From assembly GCA_964199315.1 (NCBI GenBank), contig OZ116707.1:28086001-28150000 (forward strand): a DNA stretch of 64,000 nucleotides, in the 5' to 3' direction. Below are positions 6,131 to 60,446 of the stretch, one piece after another. Within the stretch, counting starts at the first letter, position 1. Each line of letters opens with the position of its first letter. A program made the translations under genes and the position numbers. Below the pieces are notes generated by a model. It saw only the letters and a program-made list of their open reading frames with translations, had not been told where the DNA came from and ran no database searches. Source of the stretch: Orbicella franksi (lineage: Eukaryota).

Positions 6131-6757
6131 ATGTTAACCACCGGAGTAAATACCATTCGGGGTCCTAAGCGTTCTCTTCAAAACAATTCTCAATTGTCCG
6201 TGCCGGAAAGGATGAGCGCACAAGATTCACAAGTTAACAGTCAAACTAATGATGGCTCAAGAAACAATAAGCAAAAAGTGACCCTCGCTTCAAGTGAGGG
6301 ATTACGGCTATATTCGGAACTTTTAGAATCGAGATGTGACAATGCAGAGATGTGTGACATCCCTAACCATAGACGTCTTGTAAGGTCACAGTCAGAAAGC
6401 AGTTTTTCTCTTCAAGCTTGGAGAAATGTTTCTTGGACCACGGACCAGGTAACTTTACAAGATTTACATTGCGGCAACAACAGAGGGATGAAGGAATGGA
6501 GATTACCAAGTATACCTCAAAGGGGTAACAATAAAGCCGGCGAAGTCAAGGAATTCACACCGTTAACTTCAACAACGCCTCGAAGAAGAAGTTTATGCGT
6601 TTTACCAGACTTGTCAAAAGAGGGGGCTGAAAAGCGGGTACGGTTTAGAGCCTCAACACCTCTGACGAAACATCAGGTTGAAAAAGTGAACAATACTTTT
6701 GATTCGCTGGAAAGCAAATCACAGAATTTGGTCAATTGGCTCAGAGACCAACAATAA
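6131..6757 (+). CDS. Uncharacterised probably disordered protein (208 aa) with C-terminal K-x3-L-x2-WL-x2-Q helix
   Basis: ATG-started 208-aa ORF ending FDSLESKSQNLVNWLRDQQ. Contains RSQSE, RNVSW, KRVRF, LPSI and LPDL. AATAAA at 7131-7136. Confidence 0.75.
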   Translation: MLTTGVNTIRGPKRSLQNNSQLSVPERMSAQDSQVNSQTNDGSRNNKQKVTLASSEGLRLYSELLESRCDNAEMCDIPNHRRLVRSQSESSFSLQAWRNVSWTTDQVTLQDLHCGNNRGMKEWRLPSIPQRGNNKAGEVKEFTPLTSTTPRRRSLCVLPDLSKEGAEKRVRFRASTPLTKHQVEKVNNTFDSLESKSQNLVNWLRDQQ

Positions 6758-7589
6758 TCGCCTGCAAGTTTTATTTGTGTGTGTGTGTTCCTTGTTGTAC
6801 ACGAGACCTTTTATCAAATACTTTTAATTCGCTGAAAAGTTAATCAAAAAGTAGTCAAATGGTTCAGATAACAACATTAATCACCTTGCAGTTTCATTTG
6901 CGTGAGCGTGTGTTTCCCTGAAGGTAACGATAACTTCTTTATCTCAAGGTAAAGGATGCTATATCTTTCTTCATTAATCTTGTTGTTTCAACATTGTTAA
7001 CGCCCATTTGCTATTGCACTTGGTTTCATTGCGTAGTGTGCCTGTGTTGTTGTTCAGCTAAAAATCGAGTGTTTATAAGCCATATTCCGTTTTTCTTGTT
7101 CTTAGAGCGATGACTTTGATCTGGGTTTTCAATAAAATTATTTACCAAGAAGGTGTTGTTGGATGGGTGATCTATACATGTAGCTAATAGTAAAGCATAC
7201 ACGAACTTCACATAATGTAATTTTCCTTTCTTCTAAACGAACTGTATACAGAGGCGGCAGTTTGCTTCCAAAACACCATCATAAAAGTAAATTGAACTGT
7301 GAAGAAGAATTGATAGCACTAGCTGATGTCGAAAACTAGTTACTGTGATAAATTTGTTATGTTCCACCCAGTTTAACAATCTCAGGCAGTTGGCAACATT
7401 CAGTATTAAATAACAAGCAGAAAAGCTTGCAGCTTGCATCAGGCAGAAGGCAGTAGATGAGAAGGAATACGTCTGCCAGCAGCTGCCAGCAGGCAGAATT
7501 AAAGGGAGGGGGGGGGGGGGGCGAGACATTAGCAGGCAGCTGGTATCAACCAGGAGGCAACAATTAGGATCAAGTGAAAAGCGGGAAAG

Positions 7590-8770
7590 CAGTCATCAGT
7601 AGACAGCAGGTGGCAATAGCAGACAGCAGATATCAGCTACCATTCAGCATCAGATGACACACAGAAGAACAGGAGTATGCAGAAAACGGCAGACCTGAAC
7701 AGGCATTAGTTTGTCAGTAGGAAGCAGGTGGTAATAGCAGACAGCAGATTACAGTCATCATCAGTATCAGGTAACAGGCAGAAGATTAGCAGTATGCAGC
7801 AGGCAGCAGGCAGCAGACATGAGTAGGCATGCATCATTCAGCATCAGGTGACACTCGGAAGAGTAGCAGTATGCCGCAGACGGCAGACCTGAGCAAGCAT
7901 CAGTAGGTCAGCAGTAATCAGAAGGGGGCGATAAAAGACAGCCGATATCAGCCAGCATCCAGCATCAGGTGACACACCGAAGAGTAGCAGTATGCAGCAG
8001 GTAGCAGACCTGAGCAAGCATCAGTCTGTCAGCAGTAGTCAGCAAGTGGTAATAGCAGACAGCAGATATCAGCCAGCATTCAGCATCAGGTGACACACAT
8101 AAGAGTAGCAGTATGCAGCAGGTAGCAGACCTGAGCAAGCATCAGTCTGTCAGCAGTAGTCAGCAAGTGGTGATAGCAGACAGCAGACATCAGCCAGCAT
8201 TCAGCATGAGGTGACACACATACGAGTAGCAGTATGCAGCAGGTAGCAGACCTGAGCAAGCATCAGTCTGTCAGCAGTAGTCAGCAAGTGGTGATAGCAG
8301 ACAGCAGACATCAGCCAGCATTCAGCATGAGGTGACACACATACGAGTAGCAGTATGCAGCAGGTAGCAGACCTGAGCAAGCATCAGTCTGTCAGCAGTA
8401 GTCAGCAAGTGGTAATAGCAGACATCAGACATCAGCCAGCATTCAGCATTAGGTGACACACATAAGAGTAGCAGTATGCAGCGGACGGTAGACCTGAGCA
8501 AGCAATCAGTCTGTCAGCAGTAGTCAGCAAGTGGTAATAGCAGACAGCAGATATCAGCCAGCATTCAGCATTCAGCATCAGGTGACACACAGAAGAGTAG
8601 CAGTATGCAGCAGGCAGCAGATCTGGGCAGGCATCAGTCTGTCACAGCAGTAGTTAGCAGGGGGCAATAACAGACAGCAGATATCAGCCAGCATTCAGCA
8701 TCAGATGACACACAGAATAGTAGCAGTGTGCAGCAGGCATCGGTCTGTCAGCAGTAGTCAGCAGACAGCA
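7590..8770. repeat. 121-bp GCAG-rich minisatellite, about 9-10 units, degenerate at the edges
   Basis: The unit anchor GTAGCAGTATGC recurs at 7863, 7984, 8105, 8226, 8347 and 8468 (exact 121-bp period), then at 8597 and about 8720. The period is not a multiple of 3 and the frames contain stops. Confidence 0.92.
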
Positions 8771-10589
8771 GGTGGCAATAGCAAGGGTAGCATTGAGTAC
8801 TATTAAAATGTATTTCCACCAGGTATCTGTATGTCAGTTATCAGGCAGCAAGCATGATCAGGTAACAGCCAGAAGTGCAAGGGGAACAGGGTAGCAAGCC
8901 CATGCAGCATGCAACATCAGGTGGCAGAAAATGATCAATACACAGCAGTCATCATGCAACATTAGGTAGCAACTAGAGTAACAGACAACAGGCAGGTGGC
9001 AACTAACAGTCGCGTAAGTCTGTCAGTGAAGTAATCAGCAGATGACAGGCAGAGGGAAGTAATCAGTAGGCAGCAGATAGCACATGGGCATACAGTAGGA
9101 ATCAGGTACCAACTAGTGGCATAAAGCTTTAGGTAAAGGCAAAATAGGAGACAGAAGGCATCCGAGAGCAAGCAACAGACAACAAGCAGCAGGCGGAGGT
9201 CAGTAGGTAAGTTCTATAGATTCATATAAGTAGACGGACACAGAGACGCGCAGGCAGGCATGGGGGTAGAAATGAGGGTGGGTAGTATTGTAGTCCAACA
9301 AACATGTAGTCAGGGAGGCAGGTGAGAATCAGTGTGTGCATATATACATGCAGACTCACAACTTTACATACAGGCGGGCAAGTAGGTTGCGTATGCCTGA
9401 GTAACCATAAAAATATCCTTCAGTATCAAGTGTCCAAGATAGCTGTTGATTGATGCATGAATTATGATCTGAAAACTTAAAAGTTTTATAAGCCCAGAAT
9501 GAAAAACCTATTTAATCATCAATCTTCCAGCCACAAAGTTTATAACAGAAGTACGAAGAAAAGAAATCATCCTAGAATGTACTTTTTGTAGATGCCAAAA
9601 TAGCTTTCAGGTTACTCAGCCCATTCATGTGACTTCAGGCACAATTAACCTCTTACAAAAGCGGAATGTTTGATCTAAAGCAAAGCCGCAACAGAGTATC
9701 CACGAAACTCGACCCACGAAACAGTTTAATGTCTTTATTAAATACATATTTCGTTTAGTTTATATTGCTTCTTATCCCACGAATGCATGACTGTCAGATG
9801 ATGTACTTTACTGATACAACATCCAGCACTGTGCAGTGAGCTGGCGCCTCTTTTGTTTATACTAGTGTAGAGGTTTCCAACTGAGAAAACTTGTTATTTA
9901 CTGTTTAACTTAGTTTGAAGTGTACAGGATTGCAAGTGAAGAAGAGAAAGCAGACAGTTTTAGTTCATCATTTTAAGATAACAGTTTTCATACATGAGTT
10001 CTCGTTTTGTGAACGTTTCCGGTTGAACACAACTGGGCTTTACTGCCTCAAGCGATGCAGTACCTTGACGGAACATGAATTTTGTTCTTTCTTATTTCTT
10101 TTAGCTCACTATAGTAATCGATAAATCGAAAATAATACAACAGCTCGCCAATATGGTACTATATCCATGAAAAACGTAAAAAAGGAAAAACTAATCTAAT
10201 ACTTCACCGGATTGCAGACAGGAATAAGGCTTTGTGCAGCCAATTAAAAATAACACTTTCTGTGACGATTCTTTCAGTCAAACAGATGGAATACTATGCT
10301 CAAACGTGTATTAAACGCCATTCTGTCGAAAATTCCAGTCAAAGACAAGAGCTAACAGTTTGGAAATTGAAGTTTCTTCCTGTTTTGCAAAACACTGAAA
10401 ATGTGTAGTTTGCTTCACTAGAGGTATGTTGTTCCTTCCGGAACGTCATTTCCGCTGCTTTTCCGGAGTCCCAAACAGCCTGGTTTATTTCAGGACCTTA
10501 ACATTTTCCGGGACCATGGCTATTTGTTACACTTGCATCTTACTTTTAAGCACCAGTTGTAAAGAAGATTCGCGCTTAGCTGACCTTTT

Positions 10590-13500
10590 GTTAAAGTTGG
10601 TGGATGAAAAAGATTGCATTGCTAAAGGATCGAGTTCTCAAGAGGTTAGTAATTCTTTTTGGGGCTTCACTTACTTTCTTAGGAACAACTAAGCAGAGAA
10701 AAAAAGGGCATTATAGGAAACAAAACGGAAACAAGTTACAATATGTTCTTCGCTGCACTAAAATGTTGCTTCCATCAGCGAACAAGATAACAAAGAGAGT
10801 AGAACACCTTTAGAGAACTAGAGAACGTTTCAAAGTGAAGAAAAATGCACCTTAAAAAAATCTATATAAATTTATCACTTACATAGGAAATAAGAACGGA
10901 AGGTGGAAGGGAAGGACGAAAAGCAACTTCAGGAAGGCTTCGAAATATCGGTTTATAAAGTGCGAAGGTTTTTGAATGCTTGGTATCACTGGAGTCGATT
11001 TGAATAAGGTCACGCAAGGTGGAAATTTCCAAATTGTTCTCAGTAACATGCATGGCAAAACAAGATATGTAAGCTGGTGTGAAATATTCTAACTCAACCT
11101 AATCTTTACAAAGCGTTAACTTAAGTTCAATTCATAAAACGAGCCTCGGCTGGTTTAATTCGTTTTCTGAACACCTTACGGCGAGAATCTAATCGCGTAT
11201 TCTTCCTATCAAAACTTCAGTATTAATTTGGATGCAAAAATATTCACAGTCATGCAGCCAGCTTTGTTATTCTGTCGCAAGCTACGCTAGAAAACATTGC
11301 GTCTACTTCGAGACAGTAGTAAAAGAGCTGTAAAAGGCAACATTGGTGAGTAGTCTGTGCAGACGAGTCGGCTTACGCTATGCCTCAATACGGCTTCGTG
11401 TGGCAAGTTCGCTGATACACTGTTCTTAATTTTGTTCAAATCAAGGCTTAACCCTACAGTAAGCCGGCCATTAAGTAAAACGTTGTTCCGGATTCACAGC
11501 TTAATCTGTTATTTAGGTTACGTATTACAATCTGCCGACATTGTTCATTTTATTGCAATGTGAAATAAGGTTTTACCCGGCATCATAGATTTTGATGGCA
11601 TGCAAAATTATCCTCCATCATTAACATTCAAAGAAGAAAGGAAAGATGTTTGATTTCTTAAATTAAAGCTTTTGTGGGAATCAATAAGTGAATAATACTT
11701 AGCCTTAGTGTTAATGACGCTACACAGTAAGTGATCTAAAGGGTTATTCTGGTGTAGGTCAATACTGAATTTTACTCGGCCAAATCCAGAAATGTTTCAC
11801 TTTCAAATGATAATCGTCAGACGCCGGACACAACTAGACAAACAAAGAATACGATGATGGCAGCAAATTGTAGTAATTAGCCAGAAGCCAACAAATTTTA
11901 TTACCTTGTTTTCATGACAAAGAATGTATATGTTTGTTCACTAAGATAGGTTGTTGTAAACAGTATTTCAATTCTTCACTTACCTAGATAACTGAAGCAC
12001 AGGAATACAAAATGCAAGTATCAAATACTTATCAGTTAACGCACGCTGAAACAGTTCAATGGCTACCGACAAGAAAACTTGTGAAAAGCCTATAAGTAGT
12101 AAATCCATTTAGTTGACAACACAGAGATTCAAAGACCAACTTGCAGTTATGTTGTTTTTAGGAGGTTTACCTCCTCCTTGGCCTTAAAAGGTAGAGGAAT
12201 GAAAAGGTGAACATTACACTACACTGTCCTAAATAAATCATAGCTGCTTTTTCCTCTGGAGCAACAACCGTTTGAAAACTACGGAAGAATAGACACAGCG
12301 ATACCTGTTCGCCTCAAGATGAGTTTTTCCTTTTCGTAACATTTCGGCATTAATAAGCAGGTTCAGAATCTATAATAAATACACGAAAACCCTACAGAGC
12401 GATCAACGAGTAGAACTGTTGAACAACTCAAGTGAACAGCAGGCTGGCACAAAATCACCAAACCACTCAACGAAAAGGTTTCCGTCCCGGCGGAATACAT
12501 CACCTATCTTTTGTTGACTTCCCTTTTCACTAAATTCCTTTTACATATGCTGTGTCACGAGGAGGCGTTGGTGCAAAATTCCCTTTTACTGTGATGAGAT
12601 CAAACAAAAGGACTTAAGAGCAATCACGCGATGCTTTTCGAAGTCACTCCCTTCGTTGTGTTTCCAGACAATTTTCGTGGACAACGAATGTTGGACGACG
12701 ATAGAAACAACAATAGCCGCATATAGAAACAGAGCGAGAGCTTAAAATGCTGCTTTAAGTAAATCAACTTCACGAGAGTTCAGTGACGGATCTTGTGAGT
12801 GCGTTTCGTGGAACGACGGTCGTTTAAAAGAATCATGGCTTACTAGGATTTCTCACCTGTACTTCTTGACAGAAGCAAAGCTTTTCAAAGAAGATCAAGT
12901 AGTCTTAGCGAGGTTCACCTTGATGAACCTTTTTGTGTAGTCTTTTACAAAACATAATGTGAACTAAACCAGTTTTGGCTTCATCAGGGATAAATAATTA
13001 GCAGTGTGTGGCTTCTTGTAATCTGCTTGCGAGGGTGCTACATGGATTTAGTTCCCACTGGATCGAATTCATGTCCTCATTAAATTATTTCACTGTTTTC
13101 CTCTTGTAGCAGCGTACACGTATATTTCTTTTGTTACTATTTTATCGATCAGCATTGAGAGTTGTCTGTATTTAAATTATTTAATATTTCGTATATAGAT
13201 GAGTACTTCAAAAGAGTTGTCCTGCTTCTCCAAATTAAGTTTTATGCCAAAAAAGATTCGTTAAGGCTAACCATAGTTCCAGCTGGCTTTTATGGATTCC
13301 TAATCCTGATGAAAGAACAGTTTATCAGTTTACGAGCTTGAATTTACAGATAGAAAAGAAACGCTCCAGATAAAGTAAGAAAGAAATTTTCCCCAAAAGA
13401 TTACTGGAATATTGACCGGCCATTTTCAGAGATTACAAATTTGCAAGCAGCAACTTTCTATAGTTATTTACATCGAGTCAAAGTAAAGAATAGTGTGCCT

Positions 13501-13620
13501 GGAGGGCCTTCTAACTTTTAGCTTTCCTATCAGTGTTCACAAGAAAAGGAAATCATGTATAAGGTGCAAGGGTTTCTGATAATCATTACCATGATATGAA
13601 ATGCTAGTGTAGCAAAAAAA
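10590..13620. repeat. Old tandem segmental duplication, copy A
   Basis: Collinear shared blocks with 13720-18110: TTCTTAGGAACAA, ATAGGAAACAAAAyGGAAACAAGT, AGCCTCGGCTGGTTTAATTCG, GGATGCAAAAATATTCACAG, CCCGGCGGAATACA, TCGAATTCATGTCCTCATT. About 600 bp near 11650-12260 has no counterpart in copy B. Boundaries are approximate. Confidence 0.85.
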
Positions 13621-13719
13621 GAAAAAAAAAAGCTACCTAGTAGACCCTAGTAGCTTTGAGTTCAATGAACAGACTAAGGGGAACAGTTCTCGTGATTTCT
13701 GGCAGTCACGTCTGGCCAT

Positions 13720-25253: not shown

Positions 25254-27311
25254 CATCATGACGTTTCTTTTTTTTTATTTATGTCTAGCTTTCTCTGAAG
25301 TTAGCGCTTAAAGGAACATTGAGTAGATATCTCCAAAACGTGAAACGTAGTAAGAGTTACTAAAAATTAAGATAGGCACTGAATAAGCTTAATGGCGATA
25401 AAGATACGTTTTGCAGAAGAAACCGTCGGAATTTCAACCAGCAATAGATCAATACAACGGAGAGCATGAGCATTTTTCGTCTCTGCAAATAAATCAGAAA
25501 ATCGTAGCTGAAAGTGCCTTTCCCAATACAAGTCGCTGCATCATTATAAATGTTTTAACATGGATAGTCAGTATTTTAGGAACTCGTGGTAGATAACAGA
25601 GCTAACTGGACCATCAAAATTGACCTTGCTCAATCCGAGCAGTTCAGCCTTTCGCTATTTAATCAGTTTAAAAATAACTTACGTTTTTAGCCAATGGTGC
25701 ATCATGATCACCAAGACCGTTTCTTCTTAATTTATTAACACAATTCAGGAAACATTCTATAAACTTCAAATGCCAAACCATCATATTGTAACACACTAAA
25801 CTCGTCATTCTAAAATGGGAGAAGCCATGTCTCTTATCTGCTTTGCGTTGGTTCCAGGAAATAATTGGTAGACAAGAAACTATAGTCTCTATGTAAAAAT
25901 AATTTTAAGTTCCAGCATTCAAATTTCTGGCCTTAAGAGATGCTGCAAATCGATATGTGTATATTAAGGTAAATTATAATTAAGATTAGTGATAATCAAA
26001 AATTAAATCATAGTTGCCAGTATTATTAACTGGATTCAGTTTTAGCCGGCGCCAGTTATTTACTAAGTGAAACATGGTAAAGATGCCTTATACTTCCGAG
26101 GACGACTTATCATTCGAGAAAAAAGGCTTGTGTAGGTTCGCCACTATTAAATGCCCTGTGGTTTACATGCACTCAGTAAGTTTTATACGACTTATACATT
26201 GTTATGCAATGTTTCGTTTTCCAGTTGTTTTTGTAGTTTTGTAGAAGCAGTTTGACTCGCAAAACCGATCTGTAAATTAGTTTCGTAGAATAATAAAATT
26301 AAGTTAATTCTAAGTATTGTACACATCCATTCTCACGTTTGCACCAGTATGTTACGCAAGAATAAGCTTATAATTAAAGATTAAATGGATATTTTCAGAT
26401 TGAACCAGTCCTACATTTATTAAAGGTTTTGTGTTCATTGCAGGATTTTTAAAACTCAGTCGAAAAGTTACCAGGAGCTGCAGGAATCCGAGGCTCCTAA
26501 ATGCAGTATCGCTTAATATACACCGTTTTTAGTCATAAGGAAGTTAGATACCCTCAAAGTGACATTGTAACATGAAATATCAAACTCATATGTGCATCAA
26601 ATCAATGATTAGTGCTTATGCGCCCTCTGATTGGCCGCTCAAACTCCAGATAACTTCTACCGTATTTACCTTGTATAAATAATAATCTCGAGCACTGTAC
26701 GAACCACGACTAACACATAGTAAAGCGGATCCCTTTCTTTTGATGTTAAAGAAACCAGGGAGACTTCGTCCCAATGGATTAGTATATGCCAATTAAGAAA
26801 AGATGATCGTCGTCTTGAGTATATACTCGTCCAGTGATGCTGGCCTTTGACCGAAGCCTTTGTTGTCTGTCTTTACTGAAATATGCAAAACTACTACAAG
26901 TAATCTTGATGGCACTTCGAATCACGTGAATCAAAAATTGGACACTTTTATTAGAGTTAATGCAATTAATTGGTCAGGGACAGTTGCTAATACTATTGTC
27001 ACGAAAGGCATGGATTAACTCTTTTATCGCTGATATTTTTTTTATGTTTAGACAAATAGTTGCAGAATAAATAGTTATTAGGTTAGAGATCATCAAGGCT
27101 TACCTCAAATGACTCTGATAACTCTTGTCCGCGCTTTGTTTGTTGTTATTGGTGATGCTGCAGTTTTTTTGTCGGGCTCGCAAGCCACAGTTAGCTTCGA
27201 AATTACCAATTCAAAGATGTCGTTATCACCAGAAACTTACGTGGAGTGTCTTTTATAAGGTCGGCTTTGAGTGGTGAGTACGTGATTTTGTGACGTAATG
27301 CTTCACGGTAC

Positions 27312-27319
27312 TGACGTCA
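27312..27319. promoter_or_regulatory. CRE palindrome TGACGTCA
   Basis: Exact match, with a second CRE-like TGACGTAA at 27291-27298. Function untested. Confidence 0.5.
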
Positions 27320-29888: not shown

Positions 29889-30452
29889 ATGAACGAAGTG
29901 AAACGGAAAGCGACGTCGAAATACTTCGAGCAAGAAATTTGGAACAATTTGTCGAAGCAAAATTCTTTTGAAGATCGGCGACTGAATTTGAAATACCATA
30001 AACTGGAAAAGGACGAGTCTATTACAGTTAGATCATGGAATCAGGAACAGCTGGTCATGCTGAGGAGGAATAAAAAGCTGCACAGCCTCATGGACATGAA
30101 TTACTCAAGATACCTCACTCTGCCAACGTTAACCCCAGCCCCGCGCTCCCGCTCAACAACTGATTATACTCGAGGAAATACTGGATTAGGGTTGCCATCT
30201 GATGTACGATCACGGCCTCGTTCACATTCAGATCATTCGAAAAGAGACAGGCCATCGACGAAGCAGCCGAAAAGACAAGAGGAGGTCAGTTTTCCAGCCG
30301 TTTCCACCACATTGAATGTACGGAGCTCACATTCTGCTAATTCACAGCGTTCAAGCTTATCAGATAGCGAAATAACAAAACAAAATAGAACGAGTTGGAC
30401 TCGACCATCCACCCAGCTTCATAAGAGAGATAACATCACGCCTCGGCTGTGA
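29889..30452 (+). CDS. Uncharacterised basic, probably disordered protein (187 aa) with N-terminal CCDC190-like coiled coil
   Basis: ATG-started. KQNSFEDRRLNLKYHKLEK...WNQEQL aligns ungapped with the 1884 ORF. Contains LPTLTP, RSRST and RSHSD. Acceptor-like CATTGCACAG ends at 29835. Confidence 0.75.
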   Translation: MNEVKRKATSKYFEQEIWNNLSKQNSFEDRRLNLKYHKLEKDESITVRSWNQEQLVMLRRNKKLHSLMDMNYSRYLTLPTLTPAPRSRSTTDYTRGNTGLGLPSDVRSRPRSHSDHSKRDRPSTKQPKRQEEVSFPAVSTTLNVRSSHSANSQRSSLSDSEITKQNRTSWTRPSTQLHKRDNITPRL

Positions 30453-30975: not shown

Positions 30976-31113
30976 NNNNNNNNNNNNNNNNNNNNNNNNN
31001 NNNNNNNNNNNNNNNNNNNNNNNNNNNNNNNNNNNNNNNNNNNNNNNNNNNNNNNNNNNNNNNNNNNNNNNNNNNNNNNNNNNNNNNNNNNNNNNNNNNN
31101 NNNNNNNNNNNNN
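30976..31113. other. Assembly gap (138 N)
   Basis: Run of N. Confidence 1.
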
Positions 31114-32361: not shown

Positions 32362-33363
32362 ATGGCTTCATCTCAAGTACTTGCAGGGTTCCATACTCTG
32401 ACAGACGTGATCGGTCTTCCTGGAGATTTGCTAGTAATAGTAACAATCGTCTTGGAAAGACGATTTCACGCCCTGCGGCACATTCTCCTCGCCAGCCTCG
32501 CAGTGGCCGATTTTTTATGTTAAATTCTTGTAAACGCATTTCGCATTGTCAGCACAGCACAGAAAATATGATTGCACGGTCAAACAATGTGTTATCTTCA
32601 TGCATGCCTTTTGGTTTTTGTACTTCTATCTCAACACGGTTCTTCATCTGGTAGCCGTGTCCTATGATCGATACAACGCCATAGTGAGATCGCCTTTGAC
32701 CTACAATGGCACCATTACCATGTCCGAGGTGGTGATCACGGTTTTCATTTGGATAGCCCCGATACCTTTTACCGTCAACCCCGGCTCCTTGACTGAGGAG
32801 TTTAAGATACTTTTATAACTCAGAAGCATTCGTCTGTGTGCAAACGTGGTCAGCAGAGCAGAGAGAGCCAGCCATTCCATATGCCGTTACAATCTTCTCC
32901 ATTCTTGCACACTTCTTGCTCGTCGTTTTGATGAACTGGTCGGTTTTGAACACGGCGAACCATTTGCAGGCAGACATACCCATGCTGACTCCGGACACCA
33001 GTTACAAGAGAGAGCAAGGAGAATTCGTGAACGTAAGGCATCTATCCGGCGATGTTTGTATGATCATTGGGGGATTCGTGCTGTGCTATCTCCCCATTTG
33101 GATAACTAGCCTTTGCAATGCATTTCTCAAGTCGCAAAAGCTTCCAGCCGTGGTCATTCAAATCACAGGGTGTCTCTTCTTTCTGAGTTCGCTGGCTGTG
33201 CAACCCAGTCATCTATTCCATTCTAAAAAGAGGCTTTCGGACCCTTTCGAGAAGGTGTCAAGAATGTGTTTAGGCGGATTGGAGTTGGTGGAGGTGCTAA
33301 CCACATCAAGCAGACTTCAGTTCGTGGTCGGGTTCAGCCCAGGCAGCATGATTTGCACGAATA
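32362..33363 (+). pseudogene. Intronless class A (rhodopsin-like) GPCR pseudogene
   Basis: TM2 LASLAVAD, TM3 VSYDRY, TM6 GFVLCYLP and TM7 NPVIY are spread over different frames. In-frame TAA at 32521, TGA at 32569, and several frameshifts. The 3' end is approximate. Confidence 0.9.
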
Positions 33364-35875
33364 AGTGTAAGCTTTGGCCGAGTAATCACAGAAGCAGCGC
33401 GCCTGTGAAGGACAAAATCAGCACGAACCTCCCAACGCCAAGATGGACGATATTACAAGAGCATGTTAACTGAACACAAAAATAAACTGGCTACGTTTTT
33501 TTCCGAATTAATCGGATTGGTGTCATTTTTGTCGTCTGAAACTCAAATAGAGCTGTCCTATGGAAAGTAACGTTGCTTATAGCTAGTTGGTTTCTTGTGC
33601 TGCACATATTGCGAAAGCCGTTTCTAAACAGAGGACATAAGGATTTTGCACTCAGATTTTAATTGTTAATCGTTTAAGTTTTCTTAAATTATTGAATTGA
33701 ACGTTATCTATAGCTGCAACAAAACAAAAATGAAGGCATGTTTCAATTCTGTATAATGTAAGGCTTTGAATGACAACATTGTTTTAGGTTTCTGTCTGAC
33801 TTTCGTTTTCTGTAAAACTTGGTTCAGTAAGGTTAAAACATTTCAACATTACACATAGCAATTAGAATCGAATTTCTCTTAAACTAATTTCGCTACAGTT
33901 CTCTGAAGTCTATTTTCAGTCATTGAAGCAGCACTATTTTAAGACCGTGATTTTATTGAGATACCCCTGCATATAGCTCTTACTCTTTTAACAGAACACT
34001 TCAGTTAGGCGGTGAATCTTAAAGTTCAATTAATGAGGGGACTCGAAAAAAAAAACTGAACGTAAACTTTCAAAAGGAAACCCGCTGTACTACGATAAAA
34101 AGCGTAGAAATGTACGAGGATGATTTAATGTCAATGTTCGCATCGAAAAATTGAAAGAAACTGACTGCACCTTGAAGATCTCTCAATTCGAATCCATTTT
34201 TTGTCAACTTTTAAACAAACTGACAACTTCAGCTTTCTGGCGTTAAAAATAATCTTGTAAATCCTGTGTCTTAAATCGTTTCATATGAACGTGATCATTT
34301 ATTACTGTAGAACTTCGCCTTGTCTTGCTCCTAAATCCCAAGTTAAGACTTTAGATGTGACGAGTTCAGAATGAATTTGTCTTTAGATTCTCTTAGCCAG
34401 TCCCCCACCCTGAATTGCTCATATGCGTTTTTATTCCTTCCAATTTAAATGGTCACCGTCACTGAACAAACAATATAATGCTACAAATCAACTCTACGTC
34501 TTGCAATCAATCTGATCTGAACAAGCTGAGAGAATTCTTGCACTCATTAGCTGAGAGAGTATAGAGAATATTAAACGAACAGATGACACAAAAATCGACA
34601 TTTTGAGGGGGCATCATAATCCAAGAATCAAAGAGAGCGCAAAATCGCGTCTACTTGACAGGCATTTAATAACTATTTCTTGTTTTTCATTTTATTTACA
34701 CCCGAAAGCATAATTGACCTCTTATGATAGGCACGAAGAATTTGCTAGCGAATTAGGACGAAATCCTGATGTGGAGTGGCGCGCTCAAATGTTTTTCTGC
34801 TAGCGGCCAACGAATTCCAAGAAAATACCTAATTGGCTTTTTACAACTCAACGGTTTCAGATTCCAGTCACGGCAATTTTTCTAGTTCTTCTAGTGGGGG
34901 TTCCTTTCTTCAACAACGGCTGGTAATCAAGCCTTTTTTTTTTTTTTTTTTCCGAGCGACATCCAGATTGGTCTCTTTTAGAGATTTAATTAAAATTTTG
35001 CAACGAGCATCCCCGACATTTTCATATGAGAAGTCCCTCTCTGGGCACAGTTACAGCTCAAACACATGTGCATCTTTTTTACTCCTTCAGTGTAAAAGAT
35101 TTCTGCACAAAAAGTTATATTCTTCGTGTTTGTTTTCTTTCAGGGGCACGCAGTTCCCCAGGAGCATTTACGTTGACTACCCTAACTCCATTCCTGAAAA
35201 TCTGAAGCGACAACTGTCTCCCACGTCACGCATCGCCGTGCATGATAACTGCACTTTGCCATGCAGCCGGGTTGAGTCAAATTTCGCGAGGAAACTAAGA
35301 GAGCCCCGCGGCAATGGAAATTCCACAAAAAGAAAGATACTCGAAAATAGAAAAACACCGAAGAGAGTAATATTTAAGAATAAAAGAACAAGGATGGCTA
35401 AAGATGGAGAAGATTACACTAAAACGGCCGTTTACAAACGAAGAACTTGAAAATTTAGGCTAAACTTTTCAAGATGCTCAAACCGTGACGAAGCTCCTTT
35501 AAAATGATAATGAATATTATTATGAAAAGTAATAATTATGCAATGCTACTCGAGGAAACTGAAAAAGAGATAAATTCTGTCCGTTAAAAAGGGTCGTGTG
35601 AAAACTCCCGTAGGTACTCTTTCTAAAAATATATAGATATGTTTAAGTGTTGACTCATTGGCTTTGACTGGTATACGGAAGCTCCGGGTGTTGAGCTTCT
35701 GTTTTGGAATAACTTTCCATCGATTTACGTCATTTTCTGACTTTCTGAGAACATAGAAAGATGTTGACCTAATGGTGTCATGTTATTAAATTATGTTATA
35801 ACCAACGAAAAATATTTAATCTTGTAGTGAAAGCCGAGGGCTATCTCTTAAACGCCAAACTACCCTAAGGTCTTA

Positions 35876-37173: not shown

Positions 37174-37824
37174 AGCTTCTCTCAAACAGTAAGCCAAGTT
37201 AGTCATCCGGAACCGCATGATATTTCAACAAGCGTGTGAGTACTCACGTCATGCATTTCTGAATTTTGTCTACATGACCCTACATCAACAGAAATCCAGC
37301 ATTTTACAAGTTCACGTGATAAGCGTACCTGCAACGGATGTCAGTAGAATGATATTAAATTTAAAATATAAGGTTTCACACCTAATGTCAATGACTGCTC
37401 CCAGAACTATATCGTCAACACGTGCATTTCAGGTCCAATGTGACTTTGTCACGTTTATTTCTTAATTTCATTAATGTTTATACCGCGGAAAACAAAGAAA
37501 TTAAAGGACCATTCAGTTGTAGCCGCAACTGAAAGCAATGCAAATGCTTGGCAAAATTTCCTTTGGTTATTATCATAACAGCTTAACAATACTTGTTAAA
37601 CGAATATCTGTGATTCGTGCGGACAACAAAGAGTGTCTAAGTGGATGTCATAACCTGGTGTCAACACCCACAGCTATTGTTTGATAATCACGCACCATGT
37701 CGTGACCTGTACGTGATGGATATAGACTGAAGTCCGCATTTCTGTTTCTCAGTTCATCTCTGTTTTCACAGGAGACACATGATAGTTCTGCAGTGAGTGC
37801 AGACGTCCTGACTCAACAGACACA

Positions 37825-38475
37825 ATGAGGACCCTTAGAGCAGCGACGCCGATTCCTCTGCCTTCACATTACGATGAAGCGGTTTGTCCAGAAATTTTGC
37901 CTTCAAGGAGATCAAGTATGGCTTCCACTACGACTCATCTGCCTACGTTGTGCGAGGGTTCGTTGGACTGTAACATGTTGTCAAGATTTGTGCCACCCGC
38001 ATTTTCACCGTCAGAACTGGGAAAAACAGAGATAATAGCGCTTGTAGGATCGCCTTCTCATCCCAGAAGAGGACAGCTGTTTAAGTCAGCTTCAGAGAGA
38101 AAAACGAGATCTCAACAGAACAATCTCTTTCCAGACTTGAGCAGGAGAGAAATAGCTAAAGAAAACGTTGATCCCGACAAAATGCCGGCGGAATGGGTGA
38201 AAAGACTCCGACGGCCCCAGCAATACGAACTGACAAGAACAGTGTCGAATCCAGTCATTTCTAAAACGAGAAATTCTACGCTGGGTGCTAAGACGTCGAG
38301 CCCTCCAAATTCTAAAAGTTTACCACGACTTAACAGTACCGAACCCTCAAGAACGATCACCGAAAATGAACATTCTGCAGAGCTAAGAAGACACATCCAA
38401 CAAGAAAATATGGACTATGATATCTTATCGACCAAAGCTGTCATCTTAGAACGCTTTCTGAATAGTCAGAAATAA
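37825..38475 (+). CDS. Uncharacterised S/P/R-rich, probably disordered protein (216 aa) with C-terminal K-x3-L-x2-FL-x2-Q helix
   Basis: ATG-started. Ends HIQQENMDYDILSTKAVILERFLNSQK. Contains RRSS, KSASE, RTVSNP, LPTL and LPRL. AATAAA at 38952. Confidence 0.75.
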   Translation: MRTLRAATPIPLPSHYDEAVCPEILPSRRSSMASTTTHLPTLCEGSLDCNMLSRFVPPAFSPSELGKTEIIALVGSPSHPRRGQLFKSASERKTRSQQNNLFPDLSRREIAKENVDPDKMPAEWVKRLRRPQQYELTRTVSNPVISKTRNSTLGAKTSSPPNSKSLPRLNSTEPSRTITENEHSAELRRHIQQENMDYDILSTKAVILERFLNSQK

Positions 38476-40435: not shown

Positions 40436-40443
40436 TGACGTCA
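40436..40443. promoter_or_regulatory. CRE palindrome TGACGTCA
   Basis: Exact match, followed by CAG|GTAAGA (donor at 40455). Confidence 0.45.
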
Positions 40444-48707: not shown

Positions 48708-48715
48708 TGACGTCA
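48708..48715. promoter_or_regulatory. CRE palindrome TGACGTCA
   Basis: Exact match. No associated gene identified. Confidence 0.4.
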
Positions 48716-48799
48716 TCGCATCGCATCGTCATCGATTTCGCACCAAAACGCAAGCATAATCAAACATTTTGTTGTCCCTCAAGCTATTTAGCTTACGTA

Positions 48800-52680: not shown

Positions 52681-52866
52681 GTATAAATCTACGGCATTCT
52701 ATCATGAAAGCCGTTTTCTTATTGGCTACGCTACTCACTATCTATTCTGTTCTAGATAGTGAGTAGCTTAGAGGTGTGTGGTTGTTGACAAGATGAAGGC
52801 CGATTCTTCGCGTTTTCGCAGTATATGTGTAGATGATTTAGATCAAGTTTTGAACGACTGGCAGAT
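52681..52866 (+). repeat. Dispersed repeat, copy 2
   Basis: Shared blocks with 36283-36466. Confidence 0.8.
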
Positions 52867-55007
52867 GTAATTTATAATAGAGTAATCAGATTATTCGTTC
52901 TCGATTACGATGCGTGGAAGTTGGCTTCGTCAATTATCACGCGATAGCAATGCCGAGCTCAAAGATAATCTAACTGTTAAATATAGCTATCAGGTCATTA
53001 CAGCTGTTGGATGATTTTGATATCTGACAAGATTATTTTTTAGTCTCATTTTCCGGATTTATTTTATCGTGAAAATGGATAGCAGTTTTATTTGCAACTG
53101 TTACATGTAGCGACCGGCTCCTCGGCAAAGACTCGCCGAACTTAATGATTAAGCGTTTTAGTTTTTCTTTCTCTTCACTGCCGAGCAAAAAGCAACGCTT
53201 TTGTGCGCAAGAGAAGTTTCTCGAGCTCAGTATCCACCCACCCGCCCCCCTTCCTTCCTCCCACATGCCTCGTTCCTTGTCCACCCTGACTCACACTCGT
53301 GTTTCACTGTTTCAATCAGTAAAGCTTTGAATCGGATGTTAAACTTCATGTAAGAGTCTCAAGTGTCCATTCTCCTTTGGGGCGGAATGCGGAAAGGGTC
53401 GTACACCTCTGTCATAAAAACGGAAGTTTGTGGTTTCTGGAACCTCCACGAAGTCAGCAAATATTTGTCCTGTTCTTCGGCTAGACAGCAAAGTCTCAAA
53501 GGTCTGTTTACTGGTGTCTGACTCAAAATATCTGGGCTTTCTGTTAAAAGATGGGAGATTCCTAATTGAACTTTGCTGGTGAGTGGACTAATGAACATCA
53601 TGGGTGCGTCACTTAAGATTACTGTAGAGAATTGCACCATGAAGCGGATGACGAGAATCACATGCTAGATTTTGAAATGTCGTCTTAGTTGCTAGTACAA
53701 AGGACCATAGGCAAACTCTTGGCTAAGGACCGACTGAAAAGGGGGCTACAACTAAACAAAAAAGTTTCACGAGTTCCGAGGTACAATCCTACATGACGTT
53801 GTAATTCGCTTGTGCCACGTTGTCCGCCTCGGACTAAAGGGGGGAAAATGCATGGCGGCTTTACGGCGAGAACTCAATGTATTTTGAGCAAATTAAGGAG
53901 GCTCGAAATTGAAATACCGTCGAAAGCTAATCTTTGAATTTAGATAGCCTATACCACAATATTCAAATATGGACATGGCTTTTTTTTACCATTGGCAATG
54001 ATTGTGGTAAACCTTGGTTTTTAAGTGAGGCTGACTTAGTTGAAATCCAGTCATTCACTGTTTTCGTACGTCAATGTATGGTGGTTTGACAACTACAGTC
54101 ACTACGGGACTAAGTTTTAAAGTTTTATGAGTAACCTGCGAGACCGAGATTTCCTTCTCTTTCTTCTCGGTTAGAGACAAGAAGGAACTACTGCTTGCAA
54201 CCGCTCTATCGTTTGATCAACCGCCGTCCAGCGACCAGGGACGAATAAGTAAAAAATGCTGGTTTTTGAGAAGTTTTTACCGGTTTATAACTTACGCATG
54301 ACAGATAGTATTCAAAACGCTGTATGTTTGCAAGGCTGCTGACAATATCTGCTGCCCTGTGATTGACTGCAAAATGACAATTGGCAACAGTACGTCACGA
54401 ACTCATCAAATTCACCTAACTTTCGCTGTTTGCACAGTTCCAGAAACTATTGCTGCACATTACTTCACCTCACCAAGCAATTCACCGCCAAAGGAGCATG
54501 ATGTGAGGGTTGACAGACAGGTTATATAGCTTAGGTTTTTAATTATTCCAAAACCGTTAGTTTGTTTATCTGCAGGAAGCTTGCAGTTTGGAAAGCACGC
54601 GTCGGACAGCGTAGTCTTGAATGAAGCCAATTTTGGTTTAATTCGTCCTTTTCTTTGATGCTCAGTACTTCGTAGAAATTTCCAAAATTTCTAATAATAA
54701 GCGGTGGAACAGTTTGAATTGAGGTAACTCGTCGAACATAACTAAAAATTTGATTGCACGTAATCGTTTCTTACGCAGAGCACGACACATGCGACATGCG
54801 GACGTAGTTCGCGCATTCACGATAGGAAATCGAGCGGTTGCGAGCAGGGGTTCCCTCTCGTCTCTCACTGAGCAGAAACATAAGGCATCTCTGCCTCTCA
54901 GGGTATTTTGTGAGTAAAACGATAGTAACTGATAGCACAGGATTTTATGAGGTTCAACAATTAAGAGAAGATGAATATCGTCTAATTGATTTAAGATAAC
55001 TATAGTA

Positions 55008-56060
55008 TAGTGGAACCCCGTTAATACGACCATGGGTCATGGAAAATTGGTCGCATTAATGGGGTGGTCGTATTAACGAGGTAGGGTCACATTATGATGC
55101 AGCACGCTTTAAACATGTACTGTACATGAATATCATTAATTCCGCTATATATCAACCATTTTACAATTATTCTTCAACCTTACAACAGCAATTCATTGTA
55201 ACTGAACAAAACCAAGTACATGTAATGCGAGAAAACAATGACGTCTTAAAGTTCCTCAACAGGATATGGCCTCTTATGAAATGTCTGTTAATGTTAGAGC
55301 CGTTATTTGTCAGATTGTGTTTGTCCTCATTCAGGAGGGGGGTGAATAGGTTTTCGGATCGACGGATTTGGCCTTAGAAAGCGCTTGGATTGTGGATTTT
55401 TGCGGCAAGTCGAGCGGATTCGCGGATTTTGAAACACAGTGGATCGTGGACCAGTAGTGAATTTTGGCGCGAATTTCGGATTCTGCCGGTCTTGATGTTC
55501 GGATCTTGGGTCCAAAACGAAATTTGGATCATAGATCTTTCTTCAACCTTGGTCGGTATGTTAATGAGTTCATCCAAGTCATTTCTTTTTGCCAACGAAG
55601 CTCATTGATACTGTTACTAGAATTGTACTGTGTTATTGTCATCAAGCATGTTGCCTTCTTTTAGGCTATTCAGTTGTGCAAAATTAACAATGGCATTCAC
55701 TTTTACCAGTTTGCCTTTGCACTCTTACACTTCTGTTTCCGGATGTGGTCGTGGTTTCGGATTTGAACAAAAATATCGGCGGATCGACGGATTTGGTGAA
55801 AAAAAGGCACGGATCGGTGGATTTGCATACCCCTATTCACCCCCCTCATTCAGCTTCCTCACCAGTCAATTTAACCGGTCGTATTAATGGGGTAATTTTA
55901 TAAAGAAAAATAAAGACTGAGCACTCCAAAAGGTGGTCGTTGGTCGTAATAACGGGGTGGTCGGATTAACGGGGTTTTCATATAGGAGAATGAGTGGGCT
56001 TTTGCCCGGGTCACTACAGGGGATGGTGCCAACGGGTGGTCGTATGGCAGGATTCCACTG
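55008..56060. mobile_element. Tc1/mariner-type non-autonomous element carrying a nested insertion
   Basis: Ends (T)AGTGGAACCCC and GGATTCCACTG, flanked by TA at 55006-55007 and 56061-56062. Subterminal GGTCGT repeats at both ends. Confidence 0.8.
55335..55847. mobile_element. MITE nested in the mariner-type element
   Basis: Perfect 16-bp TIRs GAGGGGGGTGAATAGG and CCTATTCACCCCCCTC. Flanking direct repeat ATTCAG at 55329-55334 and 55848-55853. Internal CGGATT repeats. Confidence 0.9.
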
Positions 56061-56586
56061 TACCTCCTTTCAAATGAAAGATCTCCAATTGTGGTAAATA
56101 CTTTGTACGATAGTAGGAGCTGGTTGCGATTTTGAAATAATTGATTTTGAAGGACTGTTCAAGGCATGCTGGATCAATATCAAAGAAACTAGGATATTTC
56201 TTAAAAGCGCTTGTAGATTTTTTTTCAAAGCCGAATAGCTATTACCCTCCCAGCAGACGCTCTTAGGGCTCGTCACGCCAAAAGATCAATGCACATGCTA
56301 CAATGCTGTTATTATGTCATTGCGTCAGGATGTTCACACCGCAAACATGACAACATAACGTTCTTCGAATGTCGTTATGTCGCGACATAGGGGGAACGTT
56401 ATGTCGTTAAGTTAGCGGTATGAGCATCTTGATATAGCGACATAATAGCAACGTAACGACATAAGAAAAATCATCAACGTAACAATGTAACAAAGAACCA
56501 ATCAGAGCGGCGCAAGCATTGTTGAACCAAGCCTACCAGTCAAGTCTGATCAGGAATGTTAATTTCGATCACCTGAAAGAGTATTG

Positions 56587-56727
56587 ATGTCGTGATGTCC
56601 TTATGTCGTGATATCGTTATGTCGTGATGTCTTTATGTCGTGATGTCATTATGTCGTGATGTCATTATGTCGTCATTATGTCGTGATGTCATCATGTCGT
56701 TATGTCGTTATATGTCGTGATGTCGTG
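56587..56727. repeat. Degenerate ATGTCGTG/ATGTCRTT 8-mer microsatellite
   Basis: Tandem ATGTCGTG, ATGTCATT and ATGTCGTT units. Related TTATGTCG and CGACATAA words occur in both orientations at 56340-56465. Confidence 0.9.
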
Positions 56728-56816
56728 TGACATTCAGTAAAACCAGACACCAGGAACAAAGACGCTTTTCCCGCCACAAAAACTTTTAATGTCACGCTAA
56801 CCCTCCACGATGTGAT

Positions 56817-58399
56817 CACGTGCTGTCATTTTCCACACGCACGTGAACGTAATTACTGATCCCCGGGCACTGGATACGCCAGAAATAGTAAGCGGAATGC
56901 ATTTTACGAATGCGTTTTTTCGGGTTCGAGATATCCCGCTGGGCAACATTCAAATGTACCCATTACAACGTGTCGACCAGATAAAACCTTTTAAAATCAA
57001 CAACTCCAGCTACTTAATTGAGAACATGTCTTGTTTCGCCATAACATATCTCTACCATGTTACCCTTTCTTGCCTAAGTTAGTCGTAGACTAGACGTACT
57101 TAACCTTCACTTGTTCAGAGCAGGCGGCTTCTGTGATATTATTGCATAATCTAATACTCGACAAAATCGTTAACAGGCGCGTGAGGACTGTTACCATGCC
57201 TACAAAGTAACATCACGTGTGCCTTCACGTTGTCCTATGAAAACGTGGAATGTAGACATTCGGAAACCGGGAACGTCACCATTACAAATGTGATAATTGC
57301 TCGTGAATGCAAATTACCAACCACGTTGTCTAGGTGAAAAATCTGCCCTACAATTTTAATTAGAAAGAGACAGACGTCTTTGGGTCATGTACAATGCATT
57401 TTGCCTCATTATTAAAAAAAATAAAAAATAAAACAGGACAGGTGCGACCTACTTGTTTCCTGTGGGGCAATTTTTCTGAACATTACTTAAAACCTAGATA
57501 TTTGCATTGGGTAAGATTGATTTTGCGGTTTAGCAAATTTGCAATATAATCATTGTGATCTGAAGAGACCGTCTTTCTTACCTAATGGGAATAAACTTTT
57601 ATGACTTTCAGCCAGCTGTGCACAGCTAAATCGCAATAGAATATTATCGCTGTTGAATGACGTTGTAATAAAGAAAGTAATCACTGCAATTGAAAACACA
57701 TTATTTAGGTTTATCTGCATATTGTTCTGATGTAGTTGATTGCTGTAATGATCACCAGAAACCAGCTGTCTATACCATTTGATGAATATTTAGCAGATAA
57801 ATATCTACCTAGCCATGTCTGTCCTCAATACCAGAGTTTCTTGATTACCGTTGTCTACCTTCGGTACCGGTATTCTTTCTCTTCAAACTGCAGAAACGTT
57901 TCGTGGGATATGCATTTATTTTTACTGTTTATTTTATTTATTTTGAAAGATAACGAGAAACTGAAAATATTGCGTAATGAAAACCTGCAAACTCCTATGG
58001 AACATGAAAAGACCTCTAAGCATCGGGCTACCATTGTATTGTTACATAATCGGACCGGCGAGAACGGTTGTTAGCCGCACGTGAGGACAAGACTATAATG
58101 TCTGACCCTGGAGTCTGACATTTACAGTCTGAACCATGACTGCAGGGCTGCTGCCAAGTGTTTTCACGTGCGAATTCACCATTTTCTCTTGCAACGTAGT
58201 GGCTGAATATCATTTTCATTAAAGAGAGGTCTTTGTGGTTTCAATTTGAAGACTTTAAAGTCATTAACTTAATTCATGCTTAACAAAGAAATGTTTCAAA
58301 TGGCTTTAAACGGTCGTTCCGTTTCGCGTTGTTTAATGTTATATAACTTAAAACCAGCCGTACATTAACGTGACATACAAGACATGCACACAGCACGTG
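56817..58399. promoter_or_regulatory. Cluster of six canonical E-boxes (CACGTG)
   Basis: CACGTG at 56817, 56840, 57214, 58078, 58165 and 58394. Confidence 0.5.
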
Positions 58400-59603
58400 A
58401 AGCGAAATCGAGAAGCGATTGGATAACTTAAAATATGGAGTAATTTTAAGTGGCAGATGTACAGAATATCAGTTTAACTGAGTTTACTTAAACCACCTGG
58501 ATAAGAATACAGTCACGGCATCACGCCAAATTGCAAACGTTTGCACCTCGAGAAAGGCAGCTTTCTACACCTTCTTAGCCCGTCATTTAGTACTTAAAGT
58601 TGTTCTTAAGTCTTAAGGTAAGTTCAACTATATTCTGGAAACTTGATTGGAATGTTTGCTCTATTTATCCAAGATCGAGTTAATTATTTTGTATTTCCTT
58701 CGTTGGGCATTGCTTCTACCTCATCTTCATTGCTTTTTGTTCACTTACTACTTTGTTAAGAGCTGTCCATGATTTCTACCTCCTAAAATCGATCGTACTG
58801 TTATCCGCGAACTCTAAGCTAGTTTCACTGCTCCGCTACCACGCGATGAATCATGTCACAGCTCGAGTTTTGGCCGCCATGTGGCAAACGGTGGCAGTCT
58901 GCGGTGACTGCAGCCTGAAGACGCCGTTATATTTCGTGGGACATCATTCAGATCCCATTCAGCTCTGTATAAAATGCGCGCGGCTTAAATTAAAGCAGAT
59001 CTTTGTCTTAATTGGTTAAACAAATATGCTCTTCTACCAACAAACCGTCATAAAACTGGCTTCGTGGCATGCACTCCAAATAAAAACTGTATTTGTAGGG
59101 TAATGCTTTGTTGTCTCACTTTAATTGAATTGTGTAAACCTATGTGTAATAAAATTGCCGACCGGTGAGTGAACAAAGGGCCAATACAAGAGTTTGTTTG
59201 CTATGCAGGAGTTGTTTGACTCTCATTGCTAATTAGGCCGCCAGTTGGAAATCACGCGAGCACGATCGCAGATTTAATATCAAAGAATGTTTCTTACATT
59301 CAAACGTGAAGAACCTAAATTCCCGTATAGCCCTTGAAAACGACAGGAAGTTGACAAGAAGCAGTGCGGCCTTGGTTTGATGCATTTAATATAATAGGCT
59401 TAAGTTAAGGTGAAGGTATGCAAACCGGAACAGAATTAGATGACAGGTCATTTATTTAGTTGGGGTAATTTACAGGGGTAGTAATCGATACTAGGTACAT
59501 TCCTAAAGGTTCTTGCCGTGTTGATTTTTGGCGGCCTTTGACAGCAAATTCTATTTTACCTCTTCTGACATCAGGTGACGTACCTTGTCGCTCACAGAAC
59601 AAT

Positions 59604-60446
59604 ATGAAGGAAATACTAATGATGAAGAAGACACACAATAGCCTGCTTCCACTACGTGGAAAAATATCGCCTCCCACGATTTTGAATTGCCTAAACCATT
59701 CTACGGAGCAGAAAAATTACAAAAGCCATGAGACCACAAAACCTGTGGGTGGAAGAGAGCGTTTATTTTCCGCGTCCACGATGAGCGCTTCTAGCTCTAA
59801 ACATGGTTCAACTTTCTCTGAAAGAGACTTCACTCCACCGTTTACTCCACCGGCAAACGGTGATCGCGCGTTCCTATTTAGAAGGCCTTCCGAACATTTT
59901 CTTGAAGTCCTAGAAGAAAATAAACAAAGACCAACTGTACCTAAAGTACGATCTTCCTCTTGTTTGCCTCCATTGGGGAAAACGACTCAAGGAGACGACT
60001 CGCAGAAAAAGAATTTAAGAGGAACTAAAATTGCCTTCAGTGGTTACCTAAACGGAGAGGATGTCGTCTCTCGCCAAGTTGAATCTAATGGTGGGCGACT
60101 GCTGGCTTCTGAGCAAAGGAGCGATCCGACAGTAACAAACCTCGCTAACAAGAAGATTCTGCGAAAAAGTCACTCTCTACCTTTAATCAAGCCATACACT
60201 GCTTTTACCGCAGGAATAGACTGTGTTAACGTTTCTGTCTCGGGAAGTCACACACCAACCGATATCTTGAACGATGAACAAAAACTTAACACCTGTGACC
60301 GTATGGACAATGCGCCTATCGAGGAATATTCAGAAGAACTGTGCGATGAAGGCGACCCACTTGAAGATGATGAGGAGGAAACGTTAGAGAAGTTTAGTAT
60401 GATATGTCACTGGCTAAAAGAATGCGAAAAAGCCAAGGTCGTGTAG
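59604..60446 (+). CDS. Uncharacterised S/P/K-rich, probably disordered protein (280 aa) with acidic stretch and C-terminal K-x3-I-x2-WL helix
   Basis: The ORF track starts at a TTG (59538). The first in-frame ATG is at 59604, just after acceptor GTCGCTCACAG ending at 59597. Ends EEETLEKFSMICHWLKECEKAKVV. Contains RRPSE, RSSSCLPPL, TKIAF and RKSHSLPLI. Confidence 0.8.
   Translation: MKEILMMKKTHNSLLPLRGKISPPTILNCLNHSTEQKNYKSHETTKPVGGRERLFSASTMSASSSKHGSTFSERDFTPPFTPPANGDRAFLFRRPSEHFLEVLEENKQRPTVPKVRSSSCLPPLGKTTQGDDSQKKNLRGTKIAFSGYLNGEDVVSRQVESNGGRLLASEQRSDPTVTNLANKKILRKSHSLPLIKPYTAFTAGIDCVNVSVSGSHTPTDILNDEQKLNTCDRMDNAPIEEYSEELCDEGDPLEDDEEETLEKFSMICHWLKECEKAKVV

Follow-up and report, generated by a model that had tools for sequence, protein, structure and literature searches.

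Disordered proteins carry several kinds of short helical hydrophobic motif, such as the LxxLL nuclear-receptor box, which binds the coactivator groove of the nuclear receptor, the hydrophobic-x-x-hydrophobic-hydrophobic motif of acidic activation domains, and the F-x3-W-x2-L motif through which p53 binds MDM2. We analyzed a stretch of 64,000 nucleotides from the coral Orbicella franksi (assembly GCA_964199315.1, contig OZ116707.1, positions 28,086,001 to 28,150,000 of the forward strand; hereafter the window, to which all coordinates refer unless another contig is named), in which an initial annotation had described an ungapped C-terminal helix of about 30 residues shared by four genes, here called B1 to B4. 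Pairwise scores and profile comparisons uphold this description for B1, B2 and B3, but the similarity of B4 to the other three is at background level. The number of family genes in the window is corrected from four to three, and the sharing appears to be one of gene duplication rather than of module exchange. The features concerned are the following.

6131..6757, + strand: B1 coding sequence (CDS), 208-amino-acid (aa) protein; open reading frame (ORF) and translation, orthologues P0001-P0023, RNA contigs
6671..6754, + strand: B1 tail, the family signature helix, residues 181-208; conservation and profile match
19291..19815, - strand: B2 CDS, 174-aa protein, entirely in the last exon; orthologues P0026-P0038, spliced contigs L031 and L032
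19843 down to about 18415, - strand: B2 last exon; spliced transcript contigs
19294..19386, - strand: B2 tail, signature helix plus four extra residues, residues 144-174
27104..27219, - strand: B2 5' non-coding exon, joined to 19843 via a GT..AG intron of about 7.3 kb
37825..38475, + strand: B3 CDS, 216-aa protein; ORF, orthologues P0039-P0073
38392..38472, + strand: B3 tail, signature helix, residues 190-216
59604..60446, + strand: B4 ORF, 280 aa from the first ATG; orthologues L013-L023
60363..60443, + strand: B4 tail, an acidic run followed by EKFSMICHWL..CEKA; alignment A6

The coral tail resembles the LxxLL, activation-domain and p53 motifs in that it is a helix-prone segment within disorder, has a three-residue hydrophobic patch with acidic residues upstream, and is conserved above its surroundings. 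It differs from them in being fixed at the free C-terminus, in the extent of its conservation (about 28 residues), and in two invariant residues flanking the core, a Lys four positions before it and a Gln three positions after it. The particular likeness to LxxLL boxes that had been proposed could not be maintained, because the core reads L-x-x-[WF]-L in every member and not LxxLL.

Direct reading of the sequence reproduced exactly the C-terminal ends that had been quoted for all four ORFs. The ungapped pattern put forward for the first three ends, [HQ][IV][EQ]-x5-[FY][DE]-x3-[ST]K-x3-L-x2-[WF]L-x2-Q, is present in B1, B2 and B3, but one residue is deleted from the first half of the tail in some B2 orthologues. 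For each pair of proteins, the best ungapped BLOSUM62 segment between the final 40 residues was scored, using z values against composition-preserving shuffles and, as background, 1500 pairs of other ORF ends from the window. Scores of 60 (z 10.1) for B1-B2, 49 (z 6.6) for B2-B3 and 35 (z 3.8) for B1-B3 were obtained, each of which was attained by 0.07% of the background pairs. Profile-profile comparison gave E 2.8e-5 over 41 columns for B2-B3 and E 1e-4 for B1-B2 (2.9e-5 with wider alignments). Among B1, B2 and B3 such comparison aligns the tails only, in one common register, and detected no homology outside the tail, wider alignments included. The tails of B1, B2 and B3 are very likely homologous.

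A tail profile of 37 positions (A5) was built from 21 tails, namely those of B1-B3 and their orthologues; it contains the B1-B3 tails themselves, and independent support comes from the pairwise scores and from the B1-B2 and B2-B3 profile comparisons. When this profile was scanned against all six frames of the 497-Mb genome, five places were found at E < 1e-13 and the next best was not below E 0.26. Three of the five are B3 (E 1.3e-18), B1 (9.6e-16) and B2 (8.7e-15). The other two are B1-like: a 5'-truncated copy (L006) at C10:28065840-28065944 (-), 20 kb upstream of the window, and a full ORF of 199 aa (L004) on another contig at C1:44380445-44380552 (-), with orthologues P0024 and P0025. Short forms resembling the truncated copy exist in other corals (P0018, P0078 and P0080). 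In a search of 1.84 billion proteins, each standing for a 50%-identity cluster within a set of about 15 billion, 21 matches were obtained at E <= 1e-3, of which 20 are B1-, B2- or B3-like and the remaining one is a repetitive sequence. The family matches are 60-243 aa long and have the tail match at the extreme C-terminus in all cases (20/20). With 20 of the 21 matches being family members, unrelated C-termini are not hit at background rates, a concern raised in the initial annotation.

Species-labelled members were found in Montipora capricornis, M. foliosa, Pocillopora verrucosa, Desmophyllum pertusum and Oculina patagonica, where they are annotated as uncharacterized or hypothetical (XP_058946454.2 from Pocillopora verrucosa, XP_068725373.1 from Montipora capricornis, KAJ7383567.1 and KAJ7383565.1 from Desmophyllum pertusum, and KAL9986405.1 from Oculina patagonica). 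These public coral proteins have the same tail in the same place as B1-B3, and are without name, domain or function. Considering that Montipora belongs to the suborder Refertina and that Pocillopora and Desmophyllum belong to Vacatina, the family is older than the split of the two main stony-coral lineages. No species-labelled match outside Scleractinia was present among the profile matches, few of which carry labels, so that the range is a lower bound; judged from these sequence matches, the family has so far been found in stony corals only.

Conservation within each orthologue group is highest in the same short segment. The top-conserved 12-mer in every group is K-x3-L-x2-[WF]L-x2-Q, whose mean pairwise identity is 0.86 versus 0.50 for the rest of the protein in B1 (K196-Q207), 0.95 versus 0.72 in B2 (K158-Q169), and 0.94 versus 0.48 in B3 (K204-Q215). 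Across 35 tails from all subfamilies, one Leu and the Gln are invariant, and the Lys and the last Leu are each found in at least 90%; the K, L, W/F and L positions singled out by the initial annotation are conserved in the orthologue groups of B1-B3. Between B3 and an orthologue of 90% identity, we counted 6 synonymous and 3 non-synonymous differences in the 35 tail codons, and 20 synonymous and 16 non-synonymous differences in the other 180 codons. Synonymous changes are not depleted in the tail, which places the constraint at the level of the protein rather than of DNA or RNA. These data support the view that the tail is a genuine module, prone to form a helix and maintained by selection, at the very C-terminal end of proteins that are otherwise disordered.

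The RNA runs in which the genes were found bear coral sample labels. PolyA RNA contigs of four runs span 6123-7147 at B1 and have no joint to upstream sequence, and an orthologue with 92% identity is represented by four transcript contigs, from four samples, that align colinearly with the locus (starting at 6065, 6103 or 6109 and ending at 7150 or 7504); the B1 mRNA is therefore single-exon. Distant B1 orthologues begin at a Met that corresponds to residue 28 of B1. For B2, positions 1-116 of contig L031 correspond to 27219-27104 and the rest to 19845-18419. The intron between them has the donor gtaagc and an acceptor ...caaaaag (called pyrimidine-rich ...ag), and the coding sequence, tail included, lies entirely in the last exon. 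At B3, public sequencing runs supplied orthologue contigs that follow the window colinearly between about 37330-37415 and 41498, where two of them end, and the B3 mRNA is apparently unspliced. The tails of B1-B3 are thus present in mRNA contigs, both spliced (B2) and unspliced, and no splice form skipping the tails, as had been contemplated earlier, was seen in these transcript contigs.

B3 and B4 were modelled with AlphaFold2, which for B3 was given the orthologue alignment. In B3, helices are predicted at residues 182-197 and 200-214, with a predicted local distance difference test (pLDDT) score of 61-73, and the remainder is predicted to be disordered. An expectation of small proteins (about 160-250 aa) with one coding exon and disorder everywhere except in the tail agrees with the observed lengths of 60-243 aa, the B3 model and the transcripts. 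Overall the tails are polar, with a net negative charge. Their hydrophobic face is made up of one F/Y and, downstream of it, a short L-x-x-[WF]-L patch, and this small surface is likely the contact surface, therefore a membrane-binding helix is unlikely.

The best explanation of the data as a whole, to which we give a probability of about 0.6, is a duplicated coral family with an inherited and selected tail, from which B4 stands apart. B1, B2 and B3 would be tandem paralogues of one small family with two further copies in the same genome, each gene having one coding exon for a protein of about 170-220 aa, with B3 modelled as disordered except for the last 30 or so residues. The tail, H-[IV]-[EQ]..[FY][DE]...[ST]K...L..[WF]L..Q, appears to be the sole part alignable across the three subfamilies and is the best conserved part within each, which argues that gene duplication passed it on and that selection on the protein has preserved it. 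The earlier proposal of a module that docks different proteins does not suit this history, since B1-B3 are tandem paralogues whose tail was inherited and not recruited.

If the tail works as a short helix for binding, contact would be made by the upstream aromatic residue and the L-x-x-[WF]-L patch, and the invariant Lys and Gln together with the free C-terminal position would give specificity. The tail is a candidate protein-binding helix, a role for which we consider the chances to be about even. Because the paralogues preserve it well, the members may all use one type of docking site; that one common partner serves all of them is a more tentative suggestion. The peptide of about 28 residues is an obvious handle for finding such a partner. 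In addition, conserved basic-residue/serine sites in the disordered body could regulate the protein by phosphorylation. In the L-x-R-x-x-S-x-P-x-I site of B3, L136, S141 and P143 are invariant and I145 is nearly so. In that of B4, L186, R187, S191, L192, P193 and I195 are invariant. The site is not clear in B1 and B2, and an R-x-x-S-E motif occurs in all four proteins. Consensus patterns of this general kind are those of basophilic kinases (L-x-R-x-x-S) and of 14-3-3 mode-1 sites (R-S-x-S-x-P), and the motifs in the body suggest that these proteins may be phospho-regulated. A much more specific scenario, in which the tail would be the docking helix through which coral-specific phospho-regulated adaptors bind a single partner, with B4 as a remote fifth type and with the upstream neighbours (1884-2621 and 29889-30452) as parts of the same functional unit, is quite improbable on present evidence.

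Several points weigh against the explanation of a duplicated family with a selected binding tail. The profile match between B1 and B3 has an E-value of 0.18, which is weak alone and leans on B2 as intermediate; B2, which matches both, serves as the bridge between them. The coral-only range rests on few labelled matches, and members in sea anemones or other relatives are possible. Binding by the tail is a deduction, and the kinase and 14-3-3 interpretation of the body motifs is pattern matching to general consensus sequences. Finally, the hydrophobic moment of the tails does not exceed that of shuffles. Of the amphipathic helix originally envisaged, the helix is retained, being predicted for B3 by AlphaFold2, but with so ordinary a hydrophobic moment it is not a full amphipathic helix.

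The same ordinary moment bears on an alternative in which the tail is a self-association element, such as a short coiled coil or a helical hairpin bundle, that would build homo- or hetero-oligomers instead of docking elsewhere. The hydrophobic residues of the B1-B3 tails approximate a heptad a/d spacing across three heptads, AlphaFold2 places two consecutive helices in B3, and several paralogues coexist within one genome, all of which would suit oligomers. However, polar or charged residues (E, S, R or D) occupy several a/d positions in one paralogue or another, and the element is only about 28 residues long, so we regard self-association as unlikely. Chance or shared composition, or alternatively a regulatory or RNA signal at the nucleotide level, might also be invoked for the likeness of the B1-B3 tails, which are short and share with the remainder of these proteins a high content of E, Q, K and S. 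Such an origin is scarcely credible in view of z values of 3.8-10 against shuffles that preserve composition, of the high specificity of the profile both in the genome and among 1.84 billion proteins, and, as regards a nucleotide signal, of synonymous differences that are as frequent in the tail as elsewhere.

A further alternative concerns B4. In line with the initial annotation, all four genes might share one ancestor and the B4 tail might be a diverged docking helix, for which one may cite that B4 belongs to the same cluster and is encoded on the strand of B3, that it has the same build (a single long ORF, disorder and a terminal helix), that its tail is strongly conserved in its own right, and that B3 and B4 both have an L-x-[RK]-x-x-S-x-P-x-I site, on which the best hhalign match between B3 and B4 falls. 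The best profile alignment of B4 is also in the register K-x3-[IL]-x2-WL. The statement that the fourth tail keeps K-x3-I-x2-WL is correct to the extent that this register recurs there, but the match is weak and the tails are statistically unrelated: hhalign of B4 against the tail profiles gave E 0.4, 0.055 and 0.08 over 11-13 columns, and its ungapped scores against the B1-B3 tails are 19-27 (z 0.2-1.2), values that 3-33% of background pairs reach. Profile A5 does not match B4 in its own genome even at E <= 10, and no relationship was found between the whole-length profiles of B4 and of B1-B3. Moreover, B4 lacks the first half of the signature (H-[IV]-[EQ]..[FY][DE]) and has Cys in place of the invariant Gln, and the four-position motif, which by a rough estimate from residue frequencies fits a random ORF end in about 0.2% of cases, was picked after B4 had been seen. 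Common ancestry of all four genes is doubtful on balance. B4, with no profile match and with scores at background, falls outside the tail family as defined here, and we read it as a separate family or as a relative too remote to detect.

In its own right, B4 is a single-copy gene in this genome. Its polyA RNA runs hold the whole of 60250-60650, showing that transcription passes the stop codon into the 3' flank. AlphaFold2 predicts helices at residues 96-105 and 257-276 (pLDDT 70-75 for 257-276) and disorder otherwise. An orthologue with 28-30% identity keeps E-K-F-S-M-I-C-H-W-L-x-x-C-E-K-A at its C-terminus, and alignment A6 of B4 tails contains 15 invariant columns; B4 has its own strongly conserved C-terminal helix. 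A MAFFT placement of an internal B4 stretch (RQVES...) on the tail was dropped, as this stretch is not conserved in the distant B4 orthologue. Residues 93-105 of B4 comprise an invariant R-x-P-S-E-H-F-L-E-V-L stretch (R-R in B4 and R-S in the distant orthologue), and the helix predicted at 96-105 starts at its serine. The CREB KID region likewise has a basic-site serine followed by a helix, of which the B4 stretch is reminiscent, as a resemblance only.

Comparison with named domains and motifs gave no assignment for the family. No match was found in Pfam at E <= 1 for the B1-B4 proteins or for the B4 orthologues, in line with the earlier remark that the helix corresponds to no named domain. 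Sequences of solved structures gave no significant match to the B1-B3 tail profile or to the B4 tail profile, and a literature search for the tail peptides found no paper. A protein language-model atlas returned scores of 0.76-0.82 only, which are inside the range of shuffled proteins, and its matches to MACIR, INKA and BRCT were not used. GoLoco (PF02188) was considered for the F-D-x-L...Q...DQ look of the B1 tail, and it is like the coral tail in helical length, in its aromatic/acidic start and in its Gln-containing end. However, the spacing differs by two residues, and the tail, which ends in DQQ, EQK or SQK, is without the arginine of [DE]-Q-R; with neither a Pfam match at E <= 1 nor an Arg after the Gln, this candidate was rejected. 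When compared by eye with consensus sequences, none of GoLoco, the PIP box, APIM, CHMP MIM1, the calmodulin 1-8-14 motif, FFAT, the leucine-rich nuclear export signal and the RII-binding helix of AKAP fits. The K-R-V-R-F sequence before the B1 tail does fit the PP1-binding RVxF motif, but the other paralogue groups have not retained it.

On these sequence comparisons, the tail family may best be regarded as a new family, restricted to one lineage, whose general kind is known. What is defined here is a family of unnamed disordered coral proteins, with its members, signature tail, gene structures, expression and spread over both suborders. Stony corals have many lineage-restricted genes without known function, and an uncharacterised disordered family with a conserved terminal helix is a common sort of thing.

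Two neighbouring ORFs are weakly similar to each other. ORFs 1884-2621 (+) and 29889-30452 (+) share 31% identity over 111 aa (pairwise E 4e-6) and lie a few kb upstream of B1 and B3, respectively. Contigs of two other corals also have ORF 29889-30452 followed by B3, at protein identities of 92/90% and 41/44%; the adjacency persists even at 41-44% identity. ORF 1884-2621 has its own transcript at about 1829-3097, falls in a 90%-identity cluster with Orbicella faveolata XP_020605221.1 (LOC110044040), a separate 245-aa RefSeq protein, and contains a conserved R-R-[IV]-H-F motif that is similar to PP1-binding motifs. In the Desmophyllum model KAJ7383565.1, the B1-like gene and its upstream neighbour are joined into one. 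We rejected the possibility that ORF 1884-2621 and B1 form one gene, as the four RNA runs contain no joint between them and the four orthologue contigs start at 6065-6109.

Other features of the window were noted. The 7.3-kb intron of B2 contains, on the opposite strand, an exon (24321-25250, +) that encodes the end of an RNA recognition motif of the RBM38/RBM24/SUP-12 type (E 8.6e-11 to PDB 2cqd). Upstream of B3 are two pieces of a rhodopsin-type receptor, 32534-32815 and 32793-33470 (+), which are in different frames and overlap by 23 bases; the second matches positions 149-254 of Pfam 7tm_1 below the cut-off. In a related coral the receptor stretch is likewise split between frames, and from their sequence the pieces are probably a decaying receptor gene or a gene with an unusual intron. 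An assembly gap (30976-31113) lies between ORF 29889-30452 and these receptor fragments (32534-33470), at distances of 11 kb to B2 and 6.7 kb to B3, and the ORFs of B1-B4 are all clear of it. At about 4750-5330, the depth of RNA contigs is in the thousands in all four runs, and many contigs are 90-95% identical with loose ends on both sides, which looks like a highly expressed dispersed repeat outside B1. Long ORFs are few in the window, and its G+C content is 36-45% per 2-kb step, mostly 37-41%. Just downstream of the B1 transcript, a tandem repeat at 7835-8737 (121-bp unit, 7.4 copies, 91% matches) explains the elevated G+C content and AT skew at 8-10 kb.

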